Part shown: piece after piece, positions 3,593-51,614 of the stretch
Position numbering within the stretch: the first letter of the stretch is position 1
How the letters are laid out: every line of letters begins with the position of its first letter
Assembly: GCA_020891255.1 (NCBI GenBank)
Contig: BQFW01000003.1
Location: 1,240,001 to 1,304,000 of the forward strand
Direction of reading: 5' to 3'
DNA: 64,000 nt
Origin: Entomortierella parvispora E1425
Taxonomy: Eukaryota; Fungi; Mortierellomycota
Made by a program: the position numbers and the translations under genes
Notes under the pieces: generated by a model
Databases searched by the model: none
Told to the model about the DNA's origin: nothing
Seen by the model: the letters and a program-made list of their open reading frames with translations, nothing else

Positions 3593-3826
3593 AAAAAAAT
3601 AGGCACAGGGTTACGGAGGCGCTACCATATAGGCGCGTTTCCTCTACCCCCTGCGGCTCAGTACACAGCTGCTATTGCTCCCAAGTTACTTGTGCAATAC
3701 TCAACAAGTCTTGGACACACAACTGTGCACTGACCCCTTCACCGTGCAGTCTCTGTACAATTTCGGGTTTGAACACCCAGCCATCAGACGATTAGACACA
3801 CGACTCGAACCACCGTGCCAATCGCC
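3593..3826 (-). ncRNA. Candidate Pol III structured ncRNA, copy A (core 3600-3826, 7-T terminator)
   Basis: The core appears identical to copy C and differs from copy B by 1 nt. It has A-box-like TGGCACGGTGG, B-box GTTCAAACC, G-U-containing stems and a T run at the 3' end. Confidence 0.6.
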
Positions 3827-3930
3827 ATAATATACGAAATATATAAGAAAAATACAGTCTTTTGCATGGACCCTTGCGCAGCTCTGGCCGCTGTACAAGC
3901 ATGCAAAAAATGACCATGGCGGACAGAAAA

Positions 3931-4615
3931 TTTACTCTGCTTTTCATGACTTGTCAGCCCTCCGACCCCCTGAGCAGGGACAGCTCAAAGCTCCGTTGGC
4001 ATCGGCTTGTTCTGTCGTCACTGCTTACCAAGGACTGCTCCATTCGGCTCTGATCGAGGCCTGGAGGCCAATTATGAAAGGCCCACGCTCTGTCGTGGTC
4101 GCAGTTGCTCATCAGTTTATTCGTCGTCTGGACAGGGATGCCCTAGCTCGGCTCTGGAAGACGCGCTGCGAAGTGACTATTGCATGGGAGAAGACACAAG
4201 GTATCCGCCCCAAGATGAAGAAGCAAGCCCAGACTGGGCAACCGTGGAACAATGCCTCTGGTACGATCTTACCACCAGACACTTGCCAATGCGGAAAGCC
4301 TAACACCGACCACCATCAAGGCCTCTGCCCTGGTGCCCAAGACAATCCCACGCTGGCCGACCAGCGCTTACTGGCTTGTGTGCGTGGCCAGGTTCACTTA
4401 TCGACATTAGAAAAGATGGGGAAGATCCATTTTTTGTAACACTTTACTCTTCTTTATTACACGGTGACGAGCCGTGGCATTTGTTGCGCGGGGATCCGGG
4501 GTCTTTTGTTCGTCTGGACCACGCGGCTTTGCTCAGGTTGTAGATAGTTTGGTCTAGCACTTCACTTCTTTGGCTCGACATAGCAAATAAAATGTTGCAA
4601 AAAAAAAAAAAAAAA
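3931..4615 (+). mobile_element. 5'-truncated non-LTR retrotransposon (LINE; L1/Tx1-like ORF2 C-terminus) with poly(A) tail and 17-bp target-site duplication
   Basis: The direct repeat CCATGGCGGACAGAAAA lies at 3914-3930 and 4616-4632. AATAAA at 4586-4591 is followed by A17 at 4599-4615. The reading frame is open from the 5' junction to TAA at 4439 (…ARLWKTRCEVTIAWEKTQGI…CQCG…HH…C). Copy B of the host repeat carries the site only once (empty allele). Confidence 0.9.
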
Positions 4616-7437
4616 CCATGGCGGACAGAAAAGTCAAAATTTCAAAATTTCAAAAAAACACTGCGGACTGTCCTTTCGATGTACTCATTCTGTCAGATAA
4701 AGCTGCGAAGGTGTCGTGTTTAACTAGAGAAAGAGAGGACAGAAATATACATGTACAAAAGCAGATCGTGAGAATAATGGGTTGACGAGAATGCACCTTT
4801 CATGACCCTGCTCCAATGCTTGAAGAACCAAGCAAGGTCTCTTTTTGGGGGCACTCTCGTGTTGCTCTGGAGGTATCGGCCCTGTTGATAAGCAGACAAA
4901 ACACCAAATGCCGTTGCTCGGTATCGTTTGGTGATTGGTCATCTGGTATTTCTTGCTCACGCACGCGTGTCTTCCCTTTTCCTTCCTCACGTTCTCCTCT
5001 TCCCGGGAATCGCGGCAAGGTGCTTGAGATGGGCGCTTGTTCCGGCTGCGGTAGCCAACCCTACCTTTTTCAATTGATAATAAGGTAATAAGGCACACAA
5101 TCAAGGCGCCTCTTTGTTTGGCCCATCTCTAAAAATTGTGCCAACGCCACTGCAAGGACCAAATTTTCCAGGGAGCACAATGCACCACTCCCAGAGTTTG
5201 CGTTTCCCACAAAAAAAATCTCTCACAGGAGCACTTTTTTTTTTTTTTTGCATGGATAATGATCTTGCCCCTGGCCAATGGTCGCGCTACAGGTCCTTCA
5301 TAGTTGTCACTTACCACGTCAAAAGTATCCTCTTGGCCCAGGGGGTATCGGCGTTACATATCTCTTTTGGACTGGAACAATATACCTTGTATCGCCTCTG
5401 ATTGCTCCACGTGGGCCTAGGTCAATATTGGTATTGGTGTCTTCCTCATTGTGTTCATCATGTCCCTATCGCCTATTGCACCTCTGGGATGCCAAGATGT
5501 CCTCATCAGTAGTTCAAAGCTGTACACGACTACTGACCAGATTTATACGATCTTTGCCCTGAACTATGATGTTGGTTTCGTTGGTCTTTCATCCATGATC
5601 ACCCATGCCTGGTTGCACCACCGTGGTGTGTTCATTCTTATGATGTTGTTGCCGTCGTCACTTGCGAAGTCTGGGATTACAAACTCCCCTGGTGGGCTGT
5701 CATTTCGAGCATTACTCTCTCTTGCATCTTCATCCTTCCCGTCGGTCTCATCCAGGCCCTCACCAACCAGCAGCCCAGTCTTTACATCATCACCAAGTAT
5801 ATTATTCTCTCTATCCTCCCTGGTCGTCCCATTGCCAACGTTGCCCTCAAGACTCTTTGTTTGATCTTCACGAGGGCAAACGGTTACTAGCGCCGACATG
5901 AACTTTAAAATTTCATTCAACCAGGGAGGAGTTTTCCGTTCTTTCCATACAGTCCACATCCGCTATGACTGAAATGTGGACTGTAGTTGATTTGATCGTG
6001 TATTTCGGGTTGTCCAAAGCCCTCTCAATGTCCTTGTTGACAGGGCTGAGCGCAATTGACCTCGGAGTTGGTATTCAATGCGAATCCGGTAAACAGCGCA
6101 AGCGCTCTCAAATTCGTGCAGCAGACGCGTTATTTACCAACGGTTGTCGTTCCAGATCTGGAGGGCCGTCCAAATTTTCTGGATTCCAGAAGGCTGTTAT
6201 GGTAGCACATACTTTAAAACATACGCTCGTCCGTCCTTGGACCATGTGTCGCTGTGAACACCAAATACTATCTTCATCTATAACATACAGCAATGGAAGT
6301 CCCTCCAGCAAGTCTGGTCCCTCGACCCCAGAGGCTGCCTGAGTCAAATTGGTTTGTTTGCTGGAGCCAAAGAGAGTCGACTCTTTTTTTATTCACAAAC
6401 GTGGACACAGCCCTCTGAACTCTCCGGCGGCCCATGACCGGGTCTAGCTGCTGTTTTGAAATTATTGTACCCTCTGTTTTCCGGGCAAATCTCGGTGTAC
6501 GCCCCGAGTCTACCAGACACAGAAAAACCTCGCCCTGCGTTTGGACATGGGCTCATCCTTGTGGTGCTATTTCTACCCATTCTACAGAGGTTGAAGGTTG
6601 ACAGGGGGGAAAAAAAACTGAGGAATAAACTAGCCAATAACAGTGCAGGATCGTATCTGAACTTCTTCAGAACATGCGAGTCCGCACTGGCATTGTTTGT
6701 TCGTAAATGTGCTGCTCTTTTTCCACTCTGAGGGCGAGGATTTTCGCCTCACAGAAAGGGACTGAGCCCGCAAGAGTAAAAAGTTTCAGGGCGCGGGCGA
6801 AACCAAGTGGCTCGTCGTGCACCTCAACCCACCTTGCAGTACCACTGGGAAATCTCAATTCTTCTGCAATGTTGGGGGCCATTCGCACCTGTGCGAGTTC
6901 CACTCAATGACCAGATCATTATTTTTCCTCCAGGCGAGCACGAAGAAAGCGGCATGGGCGGTTTTCGCCTTTCGGCCACGACAGGGTACTGCATGGCGAG
7001 AGTGTAAACAACTCAGTGCTCAATTAGTCGAAACAATGTTCAGAAATGTGGGAATCTGGGCGGCCAAGTCATTTCTCTCAAAAGCATGTCAAACCGTGAT
7101 AAAGGAGTATAAATACCTCCAGGTTTGCAATGAATTCCCTACCTTCTTCACCTAAATAACAACAACTTCTTCTTTCAAACCATGTAAGTCATCTCCACGG
7201 CTACTATCCACTTGACATTCCAAGCCTACTACAACATACTTTCGCTGTACTCACTACGCCTTACTTTTAATCCAGCTCAAGTTCCGACCAAAGGAGTGAC
7301 CACAGAAGACCTCGACATCCACCAATCAACTCAATAATCCCTGTAAGACTTGTTAATGATGATCTAAGTTGTGCAAGAGGCGTAGTTATGATTCGTTGCT
7401 GACAGCCATTCATCTCGGTCAACCGCACAGGAACAAA

Positions 7438-8481: not shown

Positions 8482-8553
8482 GGAATGGAGAAGTTATGTT
8501 TGATCGCAGTGGCCGAAGGAATGGAGAAGTTATGTTTGATCGCAGTGGCCGAA
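8482..8553. repeat. Perfect 36-bp tandem duplication GGAATGGAGAAGTTATGTTTGATCGCAGTGGCCGAA x2
   Basis: Units at 8482-8517 and 8518-8553. Confidence 0.95.
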
Positions 8554-8636
8554 GTGGCTTAAACCGCCAGCCAGAAAGTGTGTATTCTTTCTTAATCGAG
8601 TCCTCCCCCAAAGGTAATATAACTTACCATTCTCCT

Positions 8637-9363
8637 CTCCTCAGTGCAGCTCATGACCTCTAGCGAACTCTCGGTCAGCTCTTGGTCATATTACAGTGCA
8701 ATAAACGTCCATTATGTTCTTTCTGAGAAGAGAACATCATGCCCGAAGATCAGTCTTGCATGGTCGCCTTGAACAGAAAGACCAAGACGCTCCGCAGCCT
8801 CGAGAGAGAGAGATGGAGAAGGAAGGGTACACCACCATCGCCGCTTCATAGTGTCAACGTCGTTACTCTCGGAGTGTATGTCCTTCATGATCCATCAAAT
8901 GTCCATTTTTACATATGTTTTTTTGAAATTTTGAAATTTTGACTTTTCTGTCCGCCATGGTCATTTTTTGCATGCTTGTACAGCGGCCAGAGCTGCGCAA
9001 GGGTCCATTCATAAGACTGTCTCTTTCTTATATATTTCGTATATTATGGCGATTGGCACGGTGGTTCGAGTCGTGTGTCTAATCGTCTGATGGCTGGGTG
9101 TTCAAACCCGAAATTGTACAGAGACTGCACGGTGAAGGGGTCAGTGCACAGTTGTGTGTCCAAGACTTGTTGAGTATTGCACAAGTAACTTGGGGGCAAT
9201 AGCAGCTGTGTACTGAGCCGCAGGGGGTAGAGGAAACGCGCCTATATGGTAGCGCCTCCGTAACCCTGTGCCTATTTTTTTTTTTTTTTTTTGTTCTCTG
9301 AGGAATCACTCGAAGTATTTTGACCATGAGTGCAGGAACCTCACTCAACATGAAGTCAAGAAG
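8637..9363 (+). repeat. Dispersed repeat copy B (about 730 bp, including flanks of the ncRNA-like core)
   Basis: Colinear with 37568-38262. Flanks are about 85-90% identical by eye count and the core is over 99% identical. Confidence 0.95.
9048..9292 (+). ncRNA. Candidate Pol III structured ncRNA, copy B (core 9048-9274, T18 terminator)
   Basis: A-box-like motif at 9054-9064 (+7 to +17) and B-box GTTCAAACC at 9100-9108 (+53 to +61). Stems pair 9048-9056 with 9079-9087 and 9141-9154 with 9203-9216. An AT-rich TATATAT lies upstream. Confidence 0.6.
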
Positions 9364-9396
9364 GAATTGAGAAAGAATCGTGACCCCAGCAAAGAA

Positions 9397-9760
9397 TTAC
9401 AATCTACCGAGCCAAGGAAGCATGTCTGACAGAAGTGGATTGAACAGCTTCGTTGTTTTGAGGAGTTGGACTTCAGGCCAGACGTATATTGCGAGATATA
9501 TCGGGGCATTGCTTCGGAAGTGTGCGGAACAAAGACTCTCGAAGGGTGATTGAGTTGCGCTCATATTGACATCTCTATCGCTGATTGAGACCACTATAGA
9601 GCGTTGGAGCTTTGTCATGAAGCTCCAGGCGGTATCGTCCATCGTCGCGGACAACATGCCAAGGCTCTTGATGTATTTTAGCCGATCAAACCCAGGCATC
9701 ATGTTGGCGCCAAGGCAGGGTAGAGCATCCTGCTTAGTAACATCACATACAGCTTTGATG
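9397..9760 (-). pseudogene. Possible coding relic (ORF fragment 9397-9702, open a short way upstream)
   Basis: Protein-like 101-aa frame with no recognisable family and no convincing gene model. Confidence 0.2.
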
Positions 9761-10417
9761 GTTCAGTGTCTACACTTGGCCTCGCTCACTAGAAAAAAAA
9801 ACATGCAAGGGGTTGGTAGCATGAAAACCATAATAGTCCTTCTCCTCTTTGGTGTTCCCTCGTGCCATTTTCTAAACTTATTTAACCGTCTCGGTGGCCG
9901 CATTGATCCGCTCGGTTCGATCTGCACTGGAGCCTAAAAGCCCTCTTTGTTCTGGGTCTTCGACGGTTTGGCGGTGCCACTAAGCTGAACGAAGGCAGTT
10001 CACAGTGGCGCCTCCTGGCTCTGGTTACGTTTTTGAACGAGGGCCGCAAGATCCTGTCGACTTTAATGCGCGCCAGTATATGCAAAGCTTTCAAAGAACA
10101 AAAGTTAAGTCAGTTGACCACTCTTTCCAATGTTAGTTGGGTACCAGTCTGAGGTCATGTATCTTCTTGGGTCACGCCTAATGTTCATCGTTGCTAACCG
10201 TCAAGAAAACGGCCCGGGTCAGCGACCAAGAGGTCGCCTCGATGAGGTCATGTGACAAAGAGTCTCAGTCAGCCCCTCTCGCCTGGGCGCCCTGTCTCCC
10301 AGGCTCTCTTTTTTTTTTTTTTTTTTTTTTTTTTGCCGTTTGCTTCATTGCATGTGTCTCCATCTTTTCTGTTCTCCATCCATCTCCTCCATCCCCCCCC
10401 AGTCGTCGTTCCTTTTG

Positions 10418-10420
<3 letters not shown>

Positions 10421-10452
<32 letters not shown>
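10421..10452. repeat. (CT)n microsatellite upstream of VNX1
   Basis: Seen directly in the sequence. Confidence 0.9.
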
Positions 10453-30040: not shown

Positions 30041-30886
30041 GGTTAAAGGAACGCAAGCAGAAGAGCAGGGGCAGTTGAGAAGAATGAAGGAGACGATGAA
30101 TGAGAGAATGGAAGACTCGGGAAACTCAGAGAATGCATGGAACAGCGGAATGCAGCCGAATGATACTATTTCTGTGCATGAGCGGTAACAAAAAAAAGAG
30201 GCAAAGCAACTGCGTGGGTGAGTGTGTGTGGATGGATGTGTTTTTGGGCGTGTGTTTGTGTGTGTGGACGAGGGTGTATGCGTGTGTATTGTGTGTATTG
30301 TGTGTATTGTGTGTGGGTGTGGGCGTGTGTTCACCTCACCCCTGTGCTGATGCTGCGTGAAAGACGCGAGCTGGGCTCGATATCAATGCATGTGCGTGGG
30401 ACCGTGTCTTCTCTCCTTGTTCTGTCTCTGTCAATCCCCTGTTTCCGACGATCTGTCTGTCTGTCTGTCTGTCTTGTCTGTCTGTCTGTCATGACTTGTC
30501 TTGTCTGTCTCTCAGTCAGTGTCTATGTGGTTATGTGGACGATGACCTTGTCTGCACCCCCGAATCGCGCCTACACCCCCCAGGCACCAGCCCTACGCGC
30601 TGGCGAGCAATGAATCACGTCACGTGACTGTCCTCATCACCGCAAACACTTCCGTCGCATGAGCTGCGCCACACAACACCTTGCCACTCATCGCCTCCAT
30701 GCAGACTGAAGACAGGCACGAACTCGCTCCTCAGCTCATTCACCCTTCGACTCGACATTCTCTCGGCCCCCTTGCGAACAAAGGATTACGCGCTAACGCA
30801 GACACCCAACACCGCACCCTCTCTGCTCCAGCTTCCTTCCTCCGCACCGGATCAGCTCAGGACCCCATCTACAAACACAAGGACCT

Positions 30887-33800
30887 ATGCAGCCAGAAGA
30901 AGCACAGCCTGTGGGCGATGCCGATCAGGCAAAGACCGTAGCCCAGACACAACATGGCGCTTACCGCCCTACCGTCAAGGACATGCAGAATGACTCGGTT
31001 GCTGAATACACAGACTTGTGGTCCGGTGACCGTGAGCCAGAGTTTGATGCCGCCATTGTCAATCGTGTTTTCCAGGATGAGCTTCTCAAGAACGACTTTA
31101 GCGTCCAGAAACTGACGCTCCTGGAAGTTGGCCAGTACTTGGAGAAGGTAGGCAGAGTTTATTATGTCTGCAGACTAAACTGGTCTCTCTCGATCTGCAT
31201 ATATGCCTTTTTTTATTTTCTGCGCCTCGCCTCTTCATGGATCACCTATACTGACCGTTCTTCTTCATACCGTTAGTATCTCTGGAGACACTATGAGCCC
31301 GATCGGTCCTCAACAACGTACATTCTGTCCATCGTTCTGATGGTAAATGAAAAGTTCAGGAGCAGAGTCCCAGCGTGGGGTAAGTTCTAGCCCAATTGCC
31401 AACTCTACTGTACGTAAGGCTCTGCATACTTACACCTATCAATCATAGGTGCGTTCGAAGACTCCCCAGAGCATTTCCCGGCCTTTTTCGAGGCTGTTTT
31501 GCGGCTTTGTGTACAGGATTCAGAGGAGGTTGACCTCGGGATGAAGCGTTATCTCTTGGTCTTCATGATTAACTGCTTTCAGAGTCTCGAGAACGTGTTG
31601 ATTAGATCAGAATGCATGCGGTACGAGTTGATCTGGATGTTCAAGGGATGCTCGCTGAGTTCTTGACGATCATAGGCGACTTTATTGACTTTATCTTGGC
31701 ATATTTAGATTGGTTTCACTTTCAACATGGCATTGTCTAGTCTCTCCAGCAGTTCGCGAAGTCGAATTCAAGGAATACCCACAGCTGGTGAAGTTTTGGA
31801 AGCACTTTGAAAAGAAGTTTGATGCTTCAGGTAACACCCGGGAACTTTCAACGATTGTGCGTTTGGAGCGAATGTATGGATCTAATAAGTAAAGTATCGC
31901 TCTACCTATTTAGAATCGAGTCAGCAGGAAAAGTCAATATTCGAGAGGACTTGGTTGAGTGAGATGATGAAGAACTTTATCAACATCCTGGAGTCATCAG
32001 CCACTGGTGACCAAGGTAAAGGGACACCACATTGAATCAGGCATAAGACGTATCTGAAGGCGACTCTAACCATTATCCGGTTCATAGATAAAATCGCTTA
32101 CTGCGAACGGTTCTTGGAGTTCCTTATCGATCTCGAGGCGCAATTACCCACGAGGCGCTTCTTCAACACTCTGCTCGAGGACCATCAAATTGTCACAATC
32201 TGCAAGCTGTCGAAACTGGCTTGTGATAAAGTGTCAGGGACTCTCTTTTCTCAACTTTTGGACATTCTTGTCTTCTACGCTGGATTCGAAATCAATGGAC
32301 ACACAGGCCTTGCACTCACAAAGGAAGAGATGATCGATATCCATGCCTCAAAGTTAACAAAACTTCAGGTAGGTTGAGATTTGAATAGTTGAACCAGTTC
32401 ATATTGATCTCTCCACTAACACATTTGTTTAATCTGACCATACTAGCGTATTGCATTTACACATTTCAAGGACGAACTTATGGACTTGGCCATGACCAAC
32501 CATCGCTCGATCGAATCCAGAGAGGCACTCGCCACATATTTTAACCAACTCAACATGGAGCAGCTTATTCAACTTTGCGATCTGCTTAATATCAGGACGT
32601 CCAACGTCTCTGACCCTTCTCAACAGCACTCACAACATATCCTCAAGGAGCTGCTTCTGACCCGCTTTGAGAAGCCTAGCAGTCAAATCGAACGCATCAA
32701 CTCATTGCCACTTTATCCTGACGAAAATGCACTCTTTGAGGATGCCGCTGTGCAAGAAGAGATGTACAACACTGACCGACCCCTGGCTCTCCCAAAATTG
32801 AACCTCCAGTTCTTGACGCTTCACGATTATCTGTTACGCAACTTCAACCTCTTCCGCCTAGAGAGCAACTACGAAATCCGTCAGGATATTGAGGATGCTG
32901 TCAGACGTCTTGGCCCACGCCCAGCGTCCAACGAGGGCTCGACCGCTTTCTCTGGATGGTCCAGAGTTGCTGCCCCTATCAGTTTTTTCAAGTATGGACC
33001 CTTGCCTTTGCTAGTTTAATTTCATTTTGTCTATAGGATCAAAAATGGGCCGACACTAACTCTTTTTCATTTTAAACTGAATGGCTGTTCTTAGAATGGT
33101 GGAGCTTGGCAAGCCCAACCTTGGAGAAGATCGTTTGTCAAAGGTTACTGCTGATGTCACGTTCAATGTCAGAAAGTACACAGACGCTATTCAGGCAGAG
33201 TGGGAGGCAATTCGCGAGCATGATATCCTGTTCTTGCTCACGATTGAAGCACATGACCATATGGATGAGGAGTGGGATGGAAAGGGCTCATTCAGGAAGC
33301 ATTATGGCCTTAAGTATGTCCGTGGCTGTGAGGTCCTCAGCGTCATTGGCCCAAATGGAAAACCTTTTGATTACAAGAAGAGCGACCCTCAGATGATTCA
33401 GGAACATCGAACTGGCAACACTCGCACTTTCAGAGTTGCACTTGATCCTAATCAGTACAAGCTTGACCAGGAAGCTGCAAAGAAGAATGGAGGAGGGGAC
33501 GTCTACCAGACCTTCAACATTGTACTTCGCCGAAAGCCCGAGGAAAACAACTTTAAGCCAGTGCTGGAAACTATTCGAGACTTGATGCAGAACGACCTTA
33601 TGATTCCCGACTGGTTGCACGATGTATTCTTGGGATATGGAAACCCAAACAGCGCTCATTACTCCCAGCTCAAGAAACAGATTCAGGAGATTGATTTCCG
33701 CGATACGTTCCAGGATTTGGACCATCTCAAATCTGCCTTCCCTGGAATGAACATCAAGGCCAAGGAGGGCGATGAGGGATCATTAGCTGCTCCATTTGTC

Positions 33801-36150
33801 GTTCGATTCCCCGATGCCCCAGAGGAATCTACTGCAGGATCCAAGAAGAAGAAGGGTGCCGATAAGGCCAGCAAGGGCAAGAACAAACCTGAAAGCGAGG
33901 CTCAAGCACAGGATGAGCTTATTGTCAGCACCTACACCACGCCAAACATGGGGCCTTACCCCGAAGATATCCCCAACATGAACCAGATCCGATTCACACC
34001 TACTCAAGTAGAGGCTATCAAGGCAGGAACGAACCCAGGTTTGACAATGGTGGTTGGACCCCCCGGAACAGGAAAGACCGACGTTGCTGTGCAGATCATT
34101 GCCAACCTCTACAACAACTTCCCCAACCAGCACACACTCTTGGTGACGCATTCTAATCAAGCCCTGAACCAGCTCTTTGAGAAGATCATTGCTTTGGATG
34201 TGGATGAGCGCCACTTGCTTCGTCTTGGTCACGGAGAGGAGGAGTTGAACACCGAGTTGAGCTTCAGCAAGTATGGTCGTGTCACCTCGTTCCTGGAGAA
34301 GCGCGTGAACCTTTTGGCTGAGGTGGACCGCCTAGCCCAATCACTGGAGATTGGTGGCGAGCATGGTTCGACTTGCGAAACAGCTGGATACTTCAACTCT
34401 TACCACGTCATCCCAATTTGGGAAAAGTACGAGCAGCAAGTACAGGACTCTGGCAGCCTGGAAGAAATCCAGGCGACCTTCCCCTTCCACCAGTTCTTCA
34501 GTAACGCCCCCACCCCTCTCTTCTCTGGATGCTCTACAGCAGATGAGGCTCTTGAAGTAGCCCGTGGTTGCTTCCGTCATCTGAAGAAGCTCTTTGAGCA
34601 ATTGGAGGAAGTTTCCGCGTTCGAGTTACTGAGAACCAGTTACGATCGGGCCAACTATTTGTTGACAAAGGAGGCCAAGATCATCGCTATGACCTGCACA
34701 CATGCCGCATTGAAGAGACGTGAGCTTGTCAAGCTGGGATTCAAGTACGACAACATTGTGATGGAGGAGGCTGCTCAGATCCTGGAGGTCGAGACTTTTA
34801 TTCCCATGTTGTTGCAGGAGCCTGAGGATGGCGTCAACCGCCTGAAGCGCGTGGTCTTGATTGGAGACCATAACCAGCTGCCCCCTGTGGTCAAGAACAC
34901 AGCTTTCCAACAATACGGCAACATGGAACAGAGTATGTTTACGCGTTTCGTCCGCTTGGGCGTGCCTACCGTTCAGTTGGATGCACAGGGTCGTGCTCGT
35001 TCTGAAATGGCGGATCTGTACAAGTGGCGCTACAAGGAATTGGGCGATCTTCCTAACATCTTGGAGCGTGAGGAGTTCAAGTATGCCAACCCTGGCTTCA
35101 AATTCGACTTCCAGTTTGTGAATGTCGATAATTTCAATGGCAAGGGTGAGACGGCACCTCGTCCCCACTTTATCCAAAACTTGGGTGAAGCCGAGTATAT
35201 CGTGGCTGTTTACCAGTACATGGTCTTGTTGGGATACCCACCAGAAAAGATTACAATCTTGACGACCTATAATGGCCAAAAAGATTTGATCCGAGACGTC
35301 CTCAAGCAACGCTGTAGTTGGAACCCTATCTTTGGTCGACCTGCGGCTGTCACGACAGTGGACAAGTACCAGGGTCAACAAAATGACTGTAAGGAACTAT
35401 TCGTGACTATATTCAATTGATTTTGTTCTGAAAAAAAGTTGTTCTAACGTTATTTGACAATTCTCTTCTTTTGTATGATTAGACGTTCTTTTGTCGCTGG
35501 TCAGGACAAAAACTGTGGGTCACGTCCGTGACGTCCGTCGTCTGATTGTAGCCTTGTCTCGTGCTCGCCTGGGTCTTTATATCTTTGGTCGTCAAAAGCT
35601 CTTTGAGAACTGCCACGAACTCGAGCCTGCTTTCAAGCAATTGCTGGCGCGTCCAACAAAGCTCTGGTTGAAGCGCGGGGAACGGTACACAGATGAGAAC
35701 CGACGAACCCTGGCCGAAACTGCAAAGGTGGATAGAGATTCTGACTCTGAGGAAGAGGAGGGTGAGGATGAATCCAAGCCCAAGACCAAGGGAAAGAAGC
35801 CATCCAAGAAGGACAAGGAGGCCAAAAAGGCTGCCCAAGAAAAGAAGAAGGCGGCTCAGGATGCCAAGAACGAGGAGAAGAAGAGCTACTCGGAGATCCA
35901 AGGTGTGGCTCAAATGGGCGAATATGTCTTTGGATTGCAAAAGGAACAGCAACGGTATGCTCTTCAACAACAGCAAGCCTACCTCGCAAGTATGGGTGTT
36001 CCTCATCAGGGGCAACAACAGACCAATGAGGCATCTGATGCATCTGAGGCTATGGACGTCTCCGAAGCAGACAAGTCTGGCAAGGAAGAAGATGGCAACG
36101 CCATGGATGTGGATTCTGAAGATGAGAACACCAAAGATGAAGACAACTAG
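30887..36150 (+). CDS. AQR: Intron-binding spliceosomal RNA helicase Aquarius (Cwf11/IBP160); about 9 exons
   Basis: [109 protein letters not shown]. Confidence 0.97.
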
Positions 36151-36342
36151 CGACAGAATTTATTCAATAGTCAACAAAAAACCCCATTCGTACTTTTTTT
36201 TTACAATCAAGACCATTGGTGGCATCTTGAATGATCGAGGGAGAGGTGTTTGTTAAAGCAGGAGACGATGACTTGAGTCAGATATGGTAACGCGGCCTGA
36301 TCGGCTATGAGAGCCAAATCCAATCAGAGCGCAGAGTACGCC

Positions 36343-36783
36343 TTATCCTGTGGCAGCAGCCTTTAAGGATCCCTGCACCATGACGCGATCATATGTTTTC
36401 TGAACGGCATCCAAGGTCCTCTCCAGCTCCTTTTGAAAGCCAGGAAAGGTTTGTGCGACGCTGACCATCTCATTGTTCACTTGTGTGAGAACCTCCATCT
36501 GATCGTTGGCTGATTTGACCAGGCCCTTCAGAGCGGCGACTCGAGATTGCTGAATCGCCATTCGATATTTGGTATTCGACAAGGCTTCCTGTTTGCTTGA
36601 GATCAAACGTTCCATCTCCTCCACGACCACATTCAAACACGCGTGTGCTTCCTCGGTGCGGCAGCAAAGATCCTCCAGTTGCGAGTCGATAGCGGCTAGT
36701 AACTCATGGGGTCTGCCCTTCAGAATGCCATTGCATAGCATGATATCAGTGGGATTCAACTCGACTTTTGTTTCCATCGCCAT
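36343..36783 (-). CDS. Hypothetical intronless coiled-coil protein (about 146 aa)
   Basis: Open frame with heptad-like composition (LEDLCCRTEEAH…VEEMERLISSKQEAL) and a CT-rich leader upstream of the ATG at 36783. No family recognised. Confidence 0.6.
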   Translation of the reverse strand: MAMETKVELNPTDIMLCNGILKGRPHELLAAIDSQLEDLCCRTEEAHACLNVVVEEMERLISSKQEALSNTKYRMAIQQSRVAALKGLVKSANDQMEVLTQVNNEMVSVAQTFPGFQKELERTLDAVQKTYDRVMVQGSLKAAATG

Positions 36784-37567
36784 TGCGCACGAGTACAAAT
36801 GAGTGTGATGAAGTGTAGGAGAGGGACAGAGTCTGCGATATCAACAAAGTGGGGTAGACAAGAGACGGTGGGAGGATGAAGAGGGAGAGAAACAGTCGTT
36901 GCTTTTGCTCGCTTTACATTCGTGTGCGGATGAAGTTAGAGTAAAGATATCAGCGTGAAGGGTCTGTCTGATCACGGCCATCAGCAGAATAACGGTGAGA
37001 GTAGCACAGTGTGGCTTTTATCATTTCTTCTTTCATTCCCCTCCTGAAAACTGGCTTTCTTTACACAGCAATTTCCAGGAACGGCAGGACTGAAACATCG
37101 AAGCTGGACGCGAACTGAATTGCCTCTCAAGATTACTGGACTGACCTGGCATGGCCCTTGGTAGAGCGGTGCCTGGGGATTTCATTCTGAATAGCACAAT
37201 TCCAGCCTTAGGTATATGCCTCAAGGGTCTCGACACTCCGATCCTCTTCTTGAATGTCCTCTTTGCGCTGTAAAGTTCTCTCATTTTTCTTATCAATTTT
37301 GTCTTTGCCATCCTCCCACAAGCCAACACGCAAAAGCGGTGTCAAGACAAACGGGAAAGGAGGAGAGGGAAGAAGTACGATGGGCACAAAGGAAAGCAGG
37401 CTCCTTGGTTGGCAGCTCCATTCATTCCATTTCACCATTGCTGCTCCCATTGACAAACTCATGCAAGTCCTCACCATTCAACCTTGCAGAACTCTCGGAC
37501 AGAAACGCAGGTCTCTGAGTCCTTTTCGCGCGGATCAGTCAAAGACAACGTAGCTGGTCCTTATCCA

Positions 37568-38262
37568 CTCCTCAGTGCAGCTCATGACGTCTGGCTGGCT
37601 CTCGGTCAGCTCTTGGTCATATTATAGTGCAATAAACGTCCATTATGTTCCTTGCAGAAGAAAACATCATGCCCGAAGGTTAGTCTTGTATGGTCCCCCT
37701 GAACAGAAAGACCAAGACGCTCCGCAGCCTCTAGAGAGAGAGGGGGAAGGAAATGTGCACCACCATCGCCGTTTCATAGTGTCAACGTCGTTACTCTCGA
37801 AGTGTATGTCCTTCATGATCCATCAAATGTCCCAGTTTACATTTTTTTCCTTTCTGTCCGCCATAGTCATTTTTTGCATGCTTGTACAGCGGCCAGAGCT
37901 GCGCAAGGGTCCATTCATAAGACTGGCACTTTCTTATATATTTCGTATATTATGGCGATTGGCACGGTGGTTCGAGTCGTGTGTCTAATCGTCTGATGGC
38001 TGGGTGTTCAAACCCGAAATTGTACAGAGACTGCACGGTGAAGGGGTCAGTGCACAGTTGTGTGTCCAAGACTTGTTGAGTATTGCACAAGTAACTTGGG
38101 AGCAATAGCAGCTGTGTACTGAGCCGCAGGGGGTAGAGGAAACGCGCCTATATGGTAGCGCCTCCGTAACCCTGTGCCTATTTTTTTTTTTTTTTTTTTT
38201 TTTTGTTGTTATCACTCAAAGTATTTGGACCGTGAGTGCAGGAACTTCACTCAATATGAAGT
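37568..38262 (+). repeat. Dispersed repeat copy C
   Basis: Colinear with 8637-9363. Confidence 0.95.
37954..38204 (+). ncRNA. Candidate Pol III structured ncRNA, copy C (core 37954-38180, T24 terminator)
   Basis: Same core as copies A and B, with the same promoter boxes, stems and terminator. Confidence 0.6.
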
Positions 38263-40160
38263 TGTTTTTGTGCCCTCAGTTCCTCATGTTGACCCTTAAA
38301 CCTCCAACAGGTCAGTTTTTTTTTTTTTTTTTTTTTTTTTTGTGCAACCTTGGTTGTCTGACATTGCATGGGTGCGTCCATTGGAAATGAGCAGAGCAGA
38401 TGATTCCGAGTCGGCATGCATCAATGCAACTCTCGAACCTGATGCCCCTTCCTCGCGCCATCATGTGCTCATTCGCCGTTCCATTCTACGACTCCTGGTT
38501 GTCGAGATCTTTAGAGAGGATTGGTACGTGCACCAAGGCAAGCCGTCCTCTGTCTGTTGGCCCACTGGCCAATCAGAGAGCATGCCATGCCGCTGCAGAT
38601 AATGCCCCCTCTGCTCGCTTTCCTCTCTCTCCCTCTCTCTCTTCTCCACCCTACCCGCCACTCCCACTTCCACTCCTGCCCTACATTCACATTCCATTGC
38701 AGTCATGGTCCATTCCCTCCATGGCTTGACATGACCCAGGGTTGTTCGGAGCAGCCCTTCACTGCACGCGCGTGCACACAGACACGAGAGCACCGCTCGC
38801 GAATTTTAAGGTATTTGTTCGAGCAGAAATGAAATCCACCAAACAAACCAAAAAAAAAGCATGCGCTGCCCTCTCCCCTGCGCCCTTACCCTCCAGTTTA
38901 CTAATACGTCTCCTGCTTGCCATCTTTCCACATACCTACTGCCTTGACAAAGCACAGCAAGCACAGCAAGCTCAGACACTGAGCCCTCGTCTTTGCCTCT
39001 CCTAGCCATCGTCTTTCTTAGCAGCCAAGCTAGTCTTGCGAGGCGCAGTCCCAAAGAACCCCCCACTCCTCCGAGGTCCTCAAGAGTTTGCCTCCCAGTA
39101 ACGAGTCCCACGAAGCTCTCCCTTGTTCCACTTGCCGCATTTCAAGAACACCTCTTCCTCAAAAGGTGCTAGCTGTCCACGGCAGGGCTTGACTCTACAA
39201 AAGCTCTGCTTTGTCCTTTCGGGCCACTTCACGGCACGCTCATCTGTCTGATGCCTGCCCCGCCCTCTGAGGTCCCCCAAGAACGTCTCTCATTCGCAGC
39301 TACTCAGAGTCTCGGCGACACAGGACGGCCTTGTCTGTCGCTTGTCTGCACCGTTGCAACACACAAGCCGCCCACGCGTCAACGGTCAACAATCAGAAAA
39401 GCAGTCCCAATTCTGAGTCTCCATCATCCTGGCCAAGCGCACACGTTTCCCATCCGTCCAAAGCCCGCAAGGAAATCGCAAGCTAAGTGGCCTTCCTTCC
39501 CTGGTTGCCCCCCCTCATGGAGGAGAAATCTGTGGTCAGCTCGGGGCATCTAGAAGTCTGTCTTCATTACAGTCCTCGAAGCCTCTGTTGGGATCTAAAC
39601 TCTACCGGTACCTTCCATCCTAGGCGAAAAAGAGTGCGCCTGAAGCCAGATGTGGTGCTGGATCGAAGGTGCTCAGAGAGTCCTTCATTGTATCCTTCAT
39701 TGCAGCCTGGTGTGTACTCTTAGCTATTTGGATAGGGTTGGATACCTGCCGGAGCGGTGAACTTGACAGGTGGTTGGGTTGTTTTGTTGAGGGGTTCCTT
39801 TTTGTTTGCGGTGGTTGCTACTCACTTCTCGTGCCATGGCTCGCTACATTGCTTCTGTTTCTGCGCTGCTGATATGTATTGGATGAGATGCTCAAGACCC
39901 TTTTTTATCTTTTCTGTTTCTTTCTTCTAGGACACATAGAGTGGCGAACCGAAATCTGACGAGCAGATGCCATGAGGCCTTTTCCAAGAACGACGATAGA
40001 GTTTCGCACCAGCTACGGTACCTCTCCCATGGAACGAGGATGGAAAACATGGTATGTTTGTTGTGTTTGTTGTATTTTGTTGTCAATGTGAGTTCTTCTC
40101 ATGGTCAATCAAGGTGATCCTGAAAATCATCAATCATCTTTGTTTCAGCGTTGACATTGA

Positions 40161-40162
<2 letters not shown>

Positions 40163-40231
<69 letters not shown>

Positions 40232-40251
40232 CTCTCTCTCTCTCTCTCTCT
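40163..40251. repeat. Long (TC)n microsatellite just upstream of the F-box gene
   Basis: About 88 bp of TC repeats with one interruption. Confidence 0.95.
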
Positions 40252-40329
40252 TGCTCACTGTTCCCTCGGTCCCAACTTGACGATACTGCAAGCACCACTT
40301 CTCATTTCAGAACCCGTTCCTGATCAAAC

Positions 40330-41367
40330 ATGGATAGTCCCGAACTTCTCCTCACGGTGGCCCAACACTTCGACCGCACGGATCTTGACAGTTGCTCCCG
40401 AGTTTCTAGAAAATGGCGCGAGTGTTTCCTTCCAGAGCTGATTGCAGGCCGAGTATTTCATCTCACTCCTGTGGCCCAACCCCAGCCCTCCTTGCCATTT
40501 CTGCGTCGCTATGGCCACAACGTCCGGTTCTTGGACTGCAAGATGATTCGTCCTATGATCCACAGCCACGGCCCGCTCTTCCCGAATGCCGATAGTCTTC
40601 ATCTAGGCAGCCGACAAATCGAGCAGGAGCTTGCCAGCATGATGCCTCTGATCCGACATTGCCCTCAAATCCATCGCCTTGAGTTGCAAAGGGTCATAGT
40701 TGGCGAAGGAAGCACCGCCCCTGACTGGAAGTTACTGTCGAGCCTCCAAAATCTGGCCGAGCTGAAGGTGGATGCACGACTGACGAAGACGCTTTTGGGG
40801 TTACTCTTGCAGAATTGTCCACACCTGATGGTTCTGTGTTTGAAGGGCATGCGGATCGAGCGACACATGCATGACAAGTTAATTCCCCGCCTTACAGCAA
40901 TGACAGTAATCGATCTAATCGACTATAACTCTAGCTCGGGCCCTGATTCTGGGAAGATTTGCAGAGAGATCCTCTGTTCAAGTCCAAGCATGATCAAATT
41001 GACATGGCCGACTTTGATCGTCGATCGTCTCAGCCTTGCAAATGGTCAAGACAGTCCTCCAGGCGCAATAACAACAGGGCAGCATCTGAACCCGAGCGTA
41101 GGGGTCTGGGCGTGCACCTCTTTACAAATCCTGTGGGTCAAGCATTTGGAGTGGTCTACGAACTCAGCACTGAACGGTCGCATGATGGGACAATTGGAGA
41201 GACTTCGAGAATTAAGACACATGGACGTGCAAACGATGATCAATGGCGGCGCGCGATGGAGGACTGGGGCATACCCCAGAGATGAGCTGGCCACCGATCT
41301 TCACTTGGGGTGGACGATCACCACATGGCCCTTGATCCTGAACTACAGCTTAAGATCTGTTCAATAA
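40330..41367 (+). CDS. F-box protein with an RNI/LRR-like C-terminal region; intronless
   Basis: N-terminal F-box-like PELLLTVAQHFDRTDLDSCSRVSRKWRECF; LRR-like CPQIHRLEL, CPHLMVLCL, WACTSLQILWV, LERLRELRHM. Confidence 0.8.
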   Translation: MDSPELLLTVAQHFDRTDLDSCSRVSRKWRECFLPELIAGRVFHLTPVAQPQPSLPFLRRYGHNVRFLDCKMIRPMIHSHGPLFPNADSLHLGSRQIEQELASMMPLIRHCPQIHRLELQRVIVGEGSTAPDWKLLSSLQNLAELKVDARLTKTLLGLLLQNCPHLMVLCLKGMRIERHMHDKLIPRLTAMTVIDLIDYNSSSGPDSGKICREILCSSPSMIKLTWPTLIVDRLSLANGQDSPPGAITTGQHLNPSVGVWACTSLQILWVKHLEWSTNSALNGRMMGQLERLRELRHMDVQTMINGGARWRTGAYPRDELATDLHLGWTITTWPLILNYSLRSVQ

Positions 41368-42529
41368 ATGGTCGTTTGTTTTCAATTCTTTCTTGCCTCC
41401 AAGCAATTGGCATGTCTACTTTTATACCTGAAGTCTAGTGTTCTTTATTAATTTTCGCAACATCATACTGGTTGGAACTTGGAAGATAATGGTCCCCCTC
41501 TGTCCCGTCCAGTCCCGCTCGCTCGCTCTTCCTTTGTCCACCCGGGAAATCTTTTGGGTTCCGCGTCGCCCAATGGCCATCGGTCTGCCATCCTCTGTAC
41601 TCTACAAATTCCTATGCCAAAGACGTGGCCACCACCCTGCATTGAGTATGAGGGGTTCCGTGGCTGTAAAAGGTGATGAGGCACAGCGAGAGGGATCTTT
41701 GGAGGAGATCAACTCGAATAAATGGAAAGATAAAAGGGCATAACTGAAGGAAAATATTAAGAACAGGAACATGGGAAATGATATCAAAAGACTGGGAGCG
41801 AAAAGACTGTAGGCCTTTCTTTACTACGGGATGGCGACTATTTATACTAGCTAGGGGCAGGACCAGGGCTTGGCTTTGAGATGTACGGTGCCATTGATCA
41901 AGATCTTTAGATCTAGAGTCTAGCTGGAGTGTGGGACGTTGTGCAAGCGACCCAAATAGCGACCCTAGCTTGGACAACAGCACCATGGTGCCTATCAATC
42001 ACGTCCGAAGGAGGCGCGCCATCAAAAACGGTTGAATCCTTGTATTTCTTTCTTTGTTTATCCAGGCCAGTTGAAAATAGAGGAGCAAGCCAACACCGAT
42101 GGTTGCCATACGAAAGCAGTAACGAGGTCCCAGAGTCCTCATAGCCATTCCCAAATCCATCCATGCCGTGCTGTTCCCTCTCTTATCATACGGTCTCCAA
42201 AATTTCTTTGCACAACCATGACCGACACACTGAAATGACCAAAACTCAAGACCGCAAATAAAGGTCTAGTAAACACTGTCGCGTCCACGCCCTGTTGTGT
42301 GGAGACCGAAGGATGAGTTGCTCATTCAAAGTCCATGGAAAGAGGTGAGGATGCAACCAATCCCTTAGTCAGAAGATGACGAGCTGCTGATCTCTCTCTT
42401 TGTGGCGTCATGCACAAAGTTTTGACATCCTTCCATCGAAGAACAAACTTGAGCACTGTACAGTGCCGCTTGGATCATACCAGGATACGTTTATTATATA
42501 CAGGTTAAGGGTTGAGCTGTGTTATTTGT

Positions 42530-50443: not shown

Positions 50444-51614
50444 AATAAAATACAAATATCCCGAGTTCTTGCAATTGTAGCTGTTCTACGTGTACCATGT
50501 TTGATATCGTCAGATTTTCGCGTATTGAAAAGGTTGCAGGCAATTTGCAGTGGTGCCGTGTCGCTATATGGCACATGTACGTCATAGGCGCCTTTGACAC
50601 TTTGACACTGGCCTAACACGAAACGAAATGCAAAGGGGAGGCAAAGGGGCGCCACAGAAGGGAGACAGATGCAGAGGGGAATGCTCGAGGGTGATTGGTC
50701 AACCAGGCAAACAAGGTTGCACTGGAGTCACATGGCTCAGGAACCGCCTTTTTCTCTCCCTTCAGACGAGAGGGATCTTTGAGGGTAGCTGTGATCCTGG
50801 CTGGCAGTTAAAGAAAAGTCTCTGGGAATGACGAGGAGGATTGGGCTAGCACCCCCAAGGGGAGATCGTCGTCAGATGAAGTCACTGGCATGGGTTCACT
50901 GGTGGGCCCACTGCACTCAACACAACACAACGAGAGCAAGAGCACATAGAGCACACAGAGAGACAAAACCGCCGCCCCGTGGGAATCGGAGGGTGACCTT
51001 GTCCAAATTAGGAAGGTACGCTTTTTCTCCCACGGGGGGCACTCATTGCGCTGTGTTGTACCTTCCCGCTTGTGCACCTGCACCCGGCCAGATCCTGCTC
51101 CGTGGGGCCTGCCGCCTACCTGTCCGCATTCACTCCAAAGTGCGACTATGTGAGTGCAAGAGCGTGTGGACGATGTTGTGGATGATGTTGTCGACGTGCT
51201 TATGATCCTGGATGGAGAGAAAGACAAGAGAGGAGGCGAGAGAGAGAGAGAGAGTGTGTGGGTAAGAGAGTCAGTCAGTCAGTCAGGGTCAGTCCAGGCC
51301 CGTGGAGTGGAGAGGAGGGACGAGCTACATCATGCGGGATACGTCTGTCCCTCCTCTCTTTCTGCCCCACCCGTCTCTTACTCACCTTTCCCACTCTTCC
51401 CCCTTTTCTTCTGTTCTTTTTCTTCTCTTCTCTCCTTCTCTCTTCTCTCTCTCTCTTTTTCTCATCTCTTTACTCATTCCTCCCCTCTCATCTCATTCCA
51501 TCTCAGTCCATCTCTCTCACCTCTCCCTTTCCTTTGCCTTCTTTCTCGTTATTGTTTTGTTGATCCCCCCGTTATTGTAAATAAGATCCGTTCTCTCCCA
51601 CAGCCCTCCATCCA

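Follow-up and report, generated by a model that had tools for sequence, protein, structure and literature searches.

This locus raises the question of what, if anything, is encoded by a 227-nt core that recurs three times, almost unchanged, in the window (the whole stretch of Entomortierella parvispora DNA that was analysed, 64,000 nt in length). Judged from the sequence, these copies are best explained as a gene family, so far undescribed and restricted to one lineage, for an RNA that RNA polymerase III (Pol III) would transcribe. The initial annotation had located the core at three places, with copies A and C identical and copy B set apart only at position 9195, and this description is confirmed. 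All three copies fall within a span of less than 35 kb, and copies B and C share a longer duplication:

Copy A core: 3600–3826, minus strand; identical to copy C over 227 nt.
Copy B core: 9048–9274, plus strand; the proposed transcript body; departs from A and C at 9195 only.
Copy C core: 37954–38180, plus strand; identical to copy A.
B/C duplication, full extent: 8630–9356, plus strand; matches 37561–38262 at 90.8% identity.

The lone change in copy B, a G instead of an A, sits in a predicted internal loop. Homology between copies A and B runs from 8916 to ~9392, and that between B and C from 8630 to 9356. All copies have 100 nt or more of upstream flank in common, and B and C have 420 nt; these shared upstream flanks indicate that the copies arose from segmental duplication and not from independent insertion. 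No target-site duplications are shared by the copies, and the extents of the common flanks differ from copy to copy. The conserved unit is also bigger than initially described, including an upstream block, a variable island, and a TATA-like stretch.

The core is markedly more constant than the sequence around it. Between paralogs, it differs at 0–1 of 227 nt, whereas the shared flanks are 5–24% divergent: the proximal upstream 127 nt carry 6–9 mismatches and a 16-nt indel among the copies, the distal upstream region, present in B and C only, has 27 mismatches in 282 nt, and the downstream 67 nt have 4–16 mismatches among the copies. The contrast between core and flank has a Fisher P of 2.7e-8 for B/C and 1e-5 for A/C, and an earlier count of 16 differences in the first 138 nt of the B/C flanks is roughly right in light of the measured flank divergence. 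The same contrast is seen between isolates. In a second isolate (X3), 4 of 189 core nucleotides differ, against 57 of 496 in the adjoining unique flank, which also has 10 gaps (Fisher P = 3e-5); the core is thus about five times less divergent than the flank, and the upstream block region has 4 differences in 103 nt. Constraint on the core, which had been attributed to purifying selection or homogenisation, is therefore supported both between paralogs and between isolates. Gene conversion alone could account for much of the paralog identity; the presence of a variable island (9009–9023) between invariant blocks points to separate elements under selection and away from a single long conversion tract.

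The family is small. In the source isolate, the contig depth of the core is 271.5 versus 73.2 for the unique flank, equivalent to ~3.7 copies genome-wide, far from the hundreds of copies that the initial annotation had associated with a SINE or MITE. At ≥85% identity over 9105–9245, this isolate yielded no other contigs. Isolate X3 has ~4 copies and two single-copy variants, with no swarm of diverged copies.

Several elements in and around the core resemble parts of a Pol III gene:

Conserved upstream block, copy B (−100 to −40): 8948–9008, plus strand; one difference among the three copies; equivalents at 3866–3926, minus strand (A), and 37854–37914, plus strand (C).
Variable island: 9009–9023, plus strand; differences at 9009, 9012, and 9020–9023.
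Invariant AT-rich, TATA-like stretch: 9024–9047, plus strand; TTATATAT at 9028–9035 and TATATTA at 9040–9046; equivalents at 3827–3850, minus strand (A), and 37930–37953, plus strand (C).
A-box-like TGGCACGGTGG: 9054–9064, plus strand; +7 to +17 from G9048; equivalents at 3810–3820, minus strand, and 37960–37970, plus strand.
B-box-like GTTCAAACC: 9100–9108, plus strand; +53 to +61; equivalents at 3766–3774, minus strand, and 38006–38014, plus strand.
Proposed Pol III terminator, copy B: 9275–9292, plus strand; T18.
Proposed Pol III terminator, copy A: 3593–3599, minus strand; T7, then an interrupted T-rich stretch.
Proposed Pol III terminator, copy C: 38181–38204, plus strand; T24.

The upstream block contains the palindromes CCATGG, GCATGC, and TGTACA. 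Both internal boxes lie at the offsets from G9048 that had been reported for them. The A-box-like element agrees with the consensus TRGCNNAGYGG at 10 of 11 positions, missing the consensus A at position 7 and failing the strict A-box definition. In isolate X3, the change G9060>A supplies this consensus A and converts a G-U pair to A-U. The B-box-like element, which lies within a 5-bp hairpin (9095–9110), fits the 9-nt B-box core but not the full 11-nt form GGTTCGANNCC, having TG instead of GG and thus missing the first G; a more distant relative (X4) carries a canonical B box, GGTTCGAATCC, at the matching place. The two boxes start 46 bp apart, and a B-box is expected 30–60 bp downstream of an A-box. 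Within the window, a pair of A and B boxes at tRNA spacing occurs in the three copies only, with a chance expectation of 0.01 per window for a pattern that was relaxed after the sequence had been seen.

The TATA-like element lies 26 bp from the A-box, a tighter arrangement than the usual tRNA-gene geometry. In type 2 Pol III genes, the A-box is found ~10–20 bp downstream of the start. Conservation begins at 9024, and G9048 is assumed to be the first transcribed base; a transcript start anywhere from ~9036 to 9060 may be compatible with the 26-bp distance. At the other end, the T-runs that the initial annotation had seen to close each copy (7, 18, and 24 Ts) directly follow the cores on their 3' side, each exceeding the minimum of 4–5 Ts required of a type 2 Pol III gene. 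The longest T-run within the core is 2, with no TTT, and this absence of internal T-runs is weakly unusual (P ~0.06).

The predicted RNA is extensively folded. The minimum-free-energy structure has −96.4 kcal/mol (z = −4.1 versus shuffles) and 81 bp, 16 of them G-U, and includes all three stems that had been named from inspection of the sequence. The opposite strand reaches −67.3 (z = −2.9), and the modelled fold is strongly strand-specific, as judged from these z values and from the proportion of G-U pairs. Two hairpins make up its 3' portion:

Long irregular hairpin, 82 nt: 9138–9219, plus strand; ~31 bp, −42.1 kcal/mol alone; equivalents at 3655–3736, minus strand (A), and 38044–38125, plus strand (C).
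3' hairpin, 52 nt: 9220–9271, plus strand; −25 kcal/mol alone; equivalents at 3603–3654, minus strand, and 38126–38177, plus strand.

The long hairpin persists under all 5' ends tried. Its apical stem (9165–9170/9181–9186) closes a loop of 10 nt, UGAGUAUUGC. The outer part of the 3' hairpin has an alternative pairing with 9055–9061. Changes that bear on the helices can be viewed in fragments of two relatives, X3 and X4. In X4, the apical stem ACUUGU/ACAAGU apparently becomes ACUCAU/AUGAGU through two double compensatory changes, read by eye from one 18-nt contig end with 9165–9167 taken as unchanged, and the apical loop has 3 nt versus 10 nt. These stem changes would be a first hint of compensatory change. 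The substitution A9222>U, seen in both X3 and X4, would break a predicted pair unless its partner at 9269 changed too, a position that the contigs did not reach. The X4 contigs run ~120 nt past the RNA end and for this reason look like DNA.

No recognisable family had been noticed for the core, and the Rfam searches agree. With Rfam 15, the whole window searched at the gathering score yielded no match, and searches at E ≤ 10 on 8900–9400, 9040–9285, and 9112–9280 returned nothing relevant; the only two matches are at chance level, a model of a plant miRNA fitting the T-tract and a fly lncRNA model being aligned over 25 nt of its length. A tRNA gene is rejected: the cloverleaf already reported as missing is not formed, ARAGORN finds 0 tRNA genes in the window, no tRNA model matches at E ≤ 10, and the first 40 nt at the 5' end adopt a 13-bp hairpin instead, with no tRNA shape. 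The resemblances to vault and 7SK RNA suggested in the initial annotation find no support, as neither model is matched at E ≤ 10, and vault RNA is further set aside by its length of 80–150 nt versus ~230 nt. Typical of 7SK RNA are GAUC repeats in a 5' hairpin and the partners HEXIM and LARP7; vault RNA goes together with a major vault protein, and a search for one in this fungus turned up nothing relevant. Inspection by eye also rejects box C/D and H/ACA snoRNAs: UGAUGG and CUGA are present, with CUGA inside a 9-bp helix, and there is neither a terminal stem nor an ACA near the 3' end.

Searches for homologues were similarly unproductive. Run at maximum sensitivity against the window plus 131 kb of loci from related Mortierellaceae, nhmmer queries with the head, body, core, and upstream block recovered only the three copies. 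The Aquarius gene lies 2.5 kb upstream of copy C, and six syntenic loci of relatives (73–96% protein identity) contain no homologue; in the closest of these loci, everything from Aquarius to the C2-domain gene is different, with beta-lactamase-fold and DUF3471 genes in place of copy C and the F-box gene. Three loci syntenic with the Ca2+/H+ antiporter gene downstream of copy B (78–80% DNA identity) likewise contain no homologue. One metagenome scan, using a pattern built from segments found also in the X4 relative, gave 7 matches, all unrelated. A protein index queried with a spurious 90-aa minus-strand ORF through the core returned no match, an exact search with the F-box protein encoded nearby found the source assembly only, and the viral and prokaryotic collections have no exact match to core segments. 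Since no homologue appears in the related loci, conservation is seen within one species label only. The published genome annotation was confined to rRNA, tRNA, and proteins, called with Barrnap, tRNAscan-SE, and AUGUSTUS (PMC8759367), and such a gene would have escaped it. The stranded RNA-seq of strain E1425 (DRA013164; PMC8759367) came from a TruSeq library made with column-purified RNA.

We propose, with a probability of roughly 0.55, that the three copies belong to a lineage-restricted, low-copy family in E. parvispora specifying a structured non-coding RNA of ~220–240 nt that is transcribed by Pol III. The family would have spread through local segmental duplication and would be kept constant by purifying selection, gene conversion possibly helping. 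Transcription would be driven by a hybrid Pol III promoter that combines the conserved upstream block, the TATA-like element, and an internal A-box/B-box head, the last probably derived from a tRNA gene whose tRNA fold was lost. The T-run would stop transcription and leave an oligo-U 3' end, and the predicted product consists of the promoter head followed by the 82-nt irregular hairpin and the 52-nt 3' hairpin. Both ends of this transcript are putative. The RNA would presumably be stable and, most likely, act as a ribonucleoprotein scaffold with a putative protein partner. A more far-reaching version of this proposal is tentative, and we consider it possible but doubtful: this would be a Pol III RNA, expressed and so far undescribed, that occurs only in Entomortierella and its close relatives, maybe one among several tRNA-headed structured families that together form a lineage-specific expansion with its own protein partners.

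The same anatomy could instead belong to a small-RNA precursor: Pol III would transcribe a tRNA-derived head together with hairpins, from which Dicer or some other nuclease would release microRNA-like RNAs. A head followed by a hairpin of ~31 bp and then a second, shorter one is the order expected of such a precursor, and the X4 apical stem, apparently preserved by compensation while loop length is free, suits a processing substrate. Major fungal milRNAs are transcribed by Pol III, one of them with RNase Z involvement (PMC3547838). However, the head of the parvispora unit has no tRNA fold, which makes release by RNase Z or RNase P unlikely; all 227 nt, and not one hairpin arm, are invariant among paralogs, and no antisense target was found in the window. 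We regard a precursor as an unlikely identity for the family. Clustered repeats often evolve in concert, and the confinement of the three copies to 35 kb, together with the lack of a homologue outside the species label in the loci searched, would also fit a functionless duplicate that is homogenised by biased gene conversion and whose Pol III-like features are relics of a dead tRNA gene. Conversion between paralogs alone is nevertheless insufficient for a core that is less diverged than its flank between isolates, and a relic would not be expected to have a variable island flanked by invariant blocks, a stem apparently maintained by double changes in X4, or a fold much stronger than those of shuffled sequences; we give this explanation a low probability.

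A selfish non-autonomous retroelement, either tRNA-derived SINE master copies or Helenus-type TRIM solo LTRs, would make the copies similar because they are young. The A/B-box head that derives from a tRNA but is no tRNA recalls both SINEs and Helenus LTRs (PMC10886601), copy number varies between isolates, with variant copies in X3, and a recently active poly(A) retrotransposition lies 88 bp upstream of copy A. The unit common to copies A and B even has TG (8916) as its first two letters and CA (9388) as its last two. By the Helenus test of common TG...CA ends and 5-bp target-site duplications (PMC10886601), however, the flanking 5-mers do not match (ACATA/GCAAA at B and CGCAG/ATAGG at A), copy C lacks those ends and diverges at 9357, and the B/C homology extends 290 bp further upstream. 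SINEs are argued against by the presence of only about 4 copies, none diverged at ≥85% identity, and by the 100–420 nt of common upstream flank, the mark of segmental duplication. Furthermore, the copies end in oligo-T, whereas local retrotransposition leaves a poly(A) tail, and their body has no similarity to the LINE-like insert at 3931–4614. An identical core beside flanks that have diverged by 8–11% means that the copies are not simply young, and a mobile element seems improbable. Less probable still is a highly diverged universal RNA (SRP, RNase P/MRP, vault, Y, 7SK, U3, or telomerase) that covariance models miss in an early-diverging fungus. In size and Pol III anatomy, the unit would suit an SRP gene or one of MRP type. 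Its 5' part (GGCACGGUGG ... UCUAAUC) bears a loose likeness to the motifs GGUGG and UGUAAU of the SRP Alu domain, two AGCA motifs lie on the 3' side of the long hairpin, and UAACCCU at 9261–9267 equals one TTAGGG-type telomere template unit. Yet even when the transcript is searched by itself, with filters at their most lenient, no relevant Rfam model, those for SRP (7SL) and RNase P/MRP included, is matched at E ≤ 10. The apical loop, whether of 10 nt or of 3 nt as in X4, is not the GNAR tetraloop of SRP helix 8, the CR-I/CR-V pairing that forms helix P4 of RNase P and MRP RNA could not be drawn by eye, and the telomere-like match covers only 7 nt inside a stem, with no realignment repeat. Three to seven copies varying between isolates would also be unusual for such genes.

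To our knowledge, non-coding Pol III RNAs beyond tRNA, 5S, U6, SRP, and RNase P/MRP are few and mostly animal; early-diverging fungi have hardly been surveyed for them, and we know of no such lineage-specific RNAs in this group. A structured, low-copy gene maintained by selection and without a family would give the few known orphan Pol III RNAs a fungal counterpart, one made tractable by a culturable fungus with 3–4 copies, and it would illustrate how reuse of a tRNA promoter can drive an unrelated RNA. If untranscribed or selfish, the unit would be an ordinary repeat.

Among known systems, vault RNA genes have the kind of type 2 Pol III promoter with upstream elements that is proposed here, and they share a clustered multicopy arrangement and, if the start lies near 9055, a possible 5'/3' panhandle; they differ in the shorter RNA and in a Vault model that the core does not match. 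Like tRNA-derived SINEs and Helenus TRIMs, the unit has A- and B-box-like elements in a head that is probably tRNA-derived but lacks a tRNA fold (PMC10886601), but its ~4 copies have upstream flanks in common, an oligo-T end, no target-site duplications, and no paired LTRs. The tRNA-miRNA RNAs of murine gammaherpesvirus 68 are Pol III transcripts in which a tRNA-related head precedes hairpins. The milRNA loci of Neurospora crassa are likewise of Pol III type, ~200–250 nt long, with a tRNA-related head and then two hairpins (PMC3547838). Unlike both, the head described here cannot be folded as a tRNA, and the hairpins are irregular and unequal. The yeast genes SCR1 (7SL), RPR1 (with an A/B-box leader), and SNR6 (with an upstream TATA) offer precedents for the combination of a TATA-like element, internal boxes, and a T-run terminator, and in these mixed-promoter genes the promoter-bearing 5' part is not itself a tRNA. 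The parvispora unit departs from them in not being homologous to the RNAs of SRP and RNase P or to U6, in the 26-bp distance between TATA-like element and A-box, and in the extra block at −100 to −40. Rodent BC1, 4.5SH, and 4.5SI RNAs have the A/B-box promoter of tRNA ancestry and the oligo-T terminator that are proposed for it, and share with it a narrow phylogenetic range and multicopy genes that are similar even in their flanks. They are ~100–150 nt long and tied to SINE families (ID, B1/B2), whereas the putative parvispora RNA would be ~230 nt long, without dispersed relatives of its core or any sequence similarity to the rodent RNAs. A further common feature is possible pairing between the 5' and 3' end regions, described for the 4.5S RNAs (PMC3440375). 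It is to these narrowly distributed Pol III RNAs, rather than to a mobile element, that we would liken the proposed family.

The window lies on contig BQFW01000003.1 of the Entomortierella parvispora E1425 assembly GCA_020891255.1 (described in PMC8759367), as an exact look-up of the F-box protein encoded at 40330-41367 shows. The 227-nt core is present three times in it, at 3600-3826 on the minus strand (copy A), 9048-9274 on the plus strand (copy B) and 37954-38180 on the plus strand (copy C). Sequence comparison bears out the initial annotation on this point: copies A and C are identical over 227 nt, and copy B differs at position 9195 only. The duplicated unit is larger than had been claimed, with copies B and C aligning between 8630-9356 and 37561-38262 at 90.8% identity, and copies A and B from 8916 to ~9392, broken by an insertion. 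A short way upstream of where the B/C duplication begins, a 37-bp sequence (8482-8518) is perfectly duplicated in tandem at 8518-8554. Dinucleotide microsatellites of one motif are found near copy C (40163-40251) and copy B (10421-10452), and simple repeats related to them at 2546-2594 and 51407-51518.

The core carries 0-1 difference per 227 nt between copies, versus 6-9 mismatches and a 16-nt indel in the proximal upstream flank (127 nt), 27/282 differences in the distal upstream flank (B/C only), and 4-16 mismatches in the first 67 nt downstream (Fisher P for core versus flank: B/C 2.7e-8, A/C 1e-5). Upstream, a block at 8948-9008 (-100 to -40 from G9048, the assumed start) has one difference across the three copies; it is followed by an island of six variable sites (9009-9023), and everything from 9024 to the end of the core, a TATA-like stretch included, is identical in all copies save at 9195. 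Two kinds of sequence in the upstream block could be bound by factors, as part of an upstream promoter element:

8948-9008 and equivalents at A and C: consecutive 6-bp palindromes CCATGG, GCATGC and TGTACA
Within 8948-9008 and equivalents at A and C: imperfect inverted repeat CAGCGGCCAGAGCTGCGC

Upstream of copy A lies a retroposed insert (3931-4614) with a poly(A) tail of 19 nt, which reads as poly-T in the RNA orientation, and a perfect target-site duplication of 17 bp, TTTTCTGTCCGCCATGG, at 3913-3929 and 4615-4631. Counted from the proposed start, the duplicated site spans -104 to -88, bordering the conserved upstream block. The 162-aa ORF of the insert (3951-4439) has no Pfam match, leaving its LINE identity unconfirmed, and a single insertion is not enough to demonstrate that Pol III genes are targeted.

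The candidate promoter elements in copy B are as follows:

9028-9035, plus strand: TATA-like TTATATAT, an invariant stretch
9054-9064, plus strand: A-box-like TGGCACGGTGG, by motif match
9100-9108, plus strand: B-box-like GTTCAAACC, by motif match

The two boxes begin 46 bp apart, the spacing of tRNA genes. When that spacing is kept, a relaxed A/B pattern, fitted after the fact, recovers the three copies only, versus 0.01 expected per window; the strict A-box and strict B-box forms both fail in the core. The core lacks any TTT run (P about 0.06), and T7, T18 or T24 follows it directly, depending on the copy. The TATA-like element begins merely 26 bp ahead of the A-box, and the candidate start would lie near 9036-9048 if tRNA-type, or near 9055-9060 if TATA-directed. 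When a start at G9055 is modelled, the ends pair (GGCACGG with CUGUGCC) and leave a UAUUUU overhang, forming a panhandle. Panhandles with paired ends are frequent in Pol III RNAs.

With G9048 and the fourth U as its ends, and 200 shuffles for comparison, the folded plus strand reaches -96.4 kcal/mol (z = -4.1; 0/200 shuffles as good) and the minus strand -67.3 kcal/mol (z = -2.9). The strand is fixed as plus because 16 of the 81 predicted pairs are G-U. The predicted elements are:

9048-9087, plus strand: 5' hairpin of 13 bp
9095-9110, plus strand: hairpin of 5 bp presenting the B-box-like sequence
9113-9133, plus strand: weak hairpin
9138-9219, plus strand: irregular hairpin of 82 nt, -42.1 kcal/mol alone
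9220-9271, plus strand: 3' hairpin of 52 nt, -25 kcal/mol alone

Only two elements stay stable at every 5' start tested, the long hairpin and the inner 3' hairpin.

Copy number was estimated from contig word depth in X1, the sequencing run that covers the region best and probably represents the source sample. Depth is 73.2 in the unique flank 9304-9800 and 271.5 in a single contig over 9038-9263 that shows no differences; the ratio gives ~3.7 copies, and one copy may exist beyond the three in the window. At >=85% identity, no other X1 contig covers 9105-9245, and a population of diverged copies is therefore absent. In X3, a second isolate with the same species label, the contig adjoining copy B (9305-9800) has 57/496 differences and 10 gaps, versus 4/189 in the main core contig (9019-9207; Fisher P = 3e-5), whose depth is about four times that of the flank. 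X3 also has G9060>A, a change that gives the A-box its consensus A and makes a predicted G-U pair A-U. Two extra variant contigs at single-copy depth carry 9/86 and 3/89 differences. The core/flank contrast and these variant contigs indicate a family that is constrained between isolates and variable in copy number.

X4 (run kind unknown) yielded two short contigs, 10-14% different, over 9119-9167 and 9201-9263, and was treated as DNA from a more distantly related organism because one contig continues ~120 nt beyond the RNA end. Past 9167 it reads CATTGCATGAGTAACTTG (one contig end, aligned by eye); if 9165-9167 is unchanged, the apical stem would go from ACUUGU/ACAAGU to ACUCAU/AUGAGU (U-A to C-G, G-C to A-U) and, in the same by-eye reading, the apical loop would shrink from 10 to 3 nt. 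Ahead of 9119 it reads ...GATGGGGGGTTCGAATCCGGG, alignable with the RNA head at ~70% (by eye, one contig end) and holding a full-consensus B-box. Because single contig ends were aligned by eye, the stem and B-box readings are a lead and not a covariation test. X3 intergenic DNA is ~12% different, X4 flanks are not alignable at 85%, and the E. parvispora label probably covers a species complex.

The homologue search is where the case is weakest. Nine relatives' loci (Aquarius orthologues upstream of copy C; the Ca2+/H+ antiporter downstream of copy B), at protein identities from 96% to 73%, contain no homologue. A metagenome scan with a pattern from the X4-common segments returned unrelated sequences only, and a protein-index search with a spurious ORF across the core returned nothing. 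The gene for Aquarius, an intron-binding spliceosomal helicase, is complete at 30619-36179 (1515 aa in the source-assembly annotation). The interval between it and a C2-domain gene (36180-42508) holds, in 6.3 kb, copy C and an F-box gene (40330-41367), with no gene called between Aquarius and the F-box gene. In the closest metagenomic relative (~85% DNA identity; L005:5674-8659) the same interval is occupied instead by two other genes, one for a beta-lactamase-fold protein and one for a DUF3471 protein, a local replacement between close relatives. One related isolate (Logan SRR5822802) has two paralogous Ca2+/H+ antiporter loci, L014 and L015; the window has one, at ~10.5-14.3 kb. So far the family is shown solely in isolates carrying the E. 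parvispora label.

The most economical reading, to which we give a probability of about 0.55, is that the copies form a genuine family of RNA genes built like Pol III genes. A tRNA gene would have become the head of the RNA gene and now act as its promoter, the family may have spread by local segmental duplication, and purifying selection would maintain it. A functionless relic homogenised by conversion is unlikely: because two fixed blocks flank a variable island, the pattern is that expected from selection on discrete elements, and one tract of gene conversion would not produce it. Processing into small RNAs has a precedent in Neurospora (PMC3547838), and we give such a precursor a low probability; within the Pol III gene reading, a stable structured RNA in a ribonucleoprotein is favoured because the full length is invariant among paralogs.

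A selfish retroelement is improbable. A SINE is rejected by the ~3.7 copies, the upstream flanks common to them, an end in oligo-T and not poly(A), and the absence of any resemblance to the window's LINE-like fragment. Because the A/B unit starts with TG and finishes with CA, a solo LTR from a TRIM that bears a tRNA (Helenus; PMC10886601) was considered; the flanking 5-mers do not match, B/C homology goes 290 bp past the TG 'end', and copy C diverges earlier downstream. A very diverged universal RNA is least probable of all. Rfam 15 gives no match across the window at gathering score and nothing relevant at E<=10 for the unit, the transcript alone or the body alone, and ARAGORN finds no tRNA, in agreement with the initial claim of no recognisable family. 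SRP, RNase P/MRP, vault, 7SK, snoRNA and telomerase RNA each miss a defining feature. A viral or endosymbiont origin was rejected, as core segments have no exact match in viral and prokaryotic collections.

The initial interpretation as a functional Pol III RNA is partly supported, by the absence of a known family, the low copy number, the core constraint and a first hint of compensatory change; its expression is a prediction. The published E1425 RNA-seq (DRA013164) used column-purified RNA and a TruSeq kit (PMC8759367), a poor method for detecting such an RNA. The locus would add an undescribed RNA family of a general kind that is already known.
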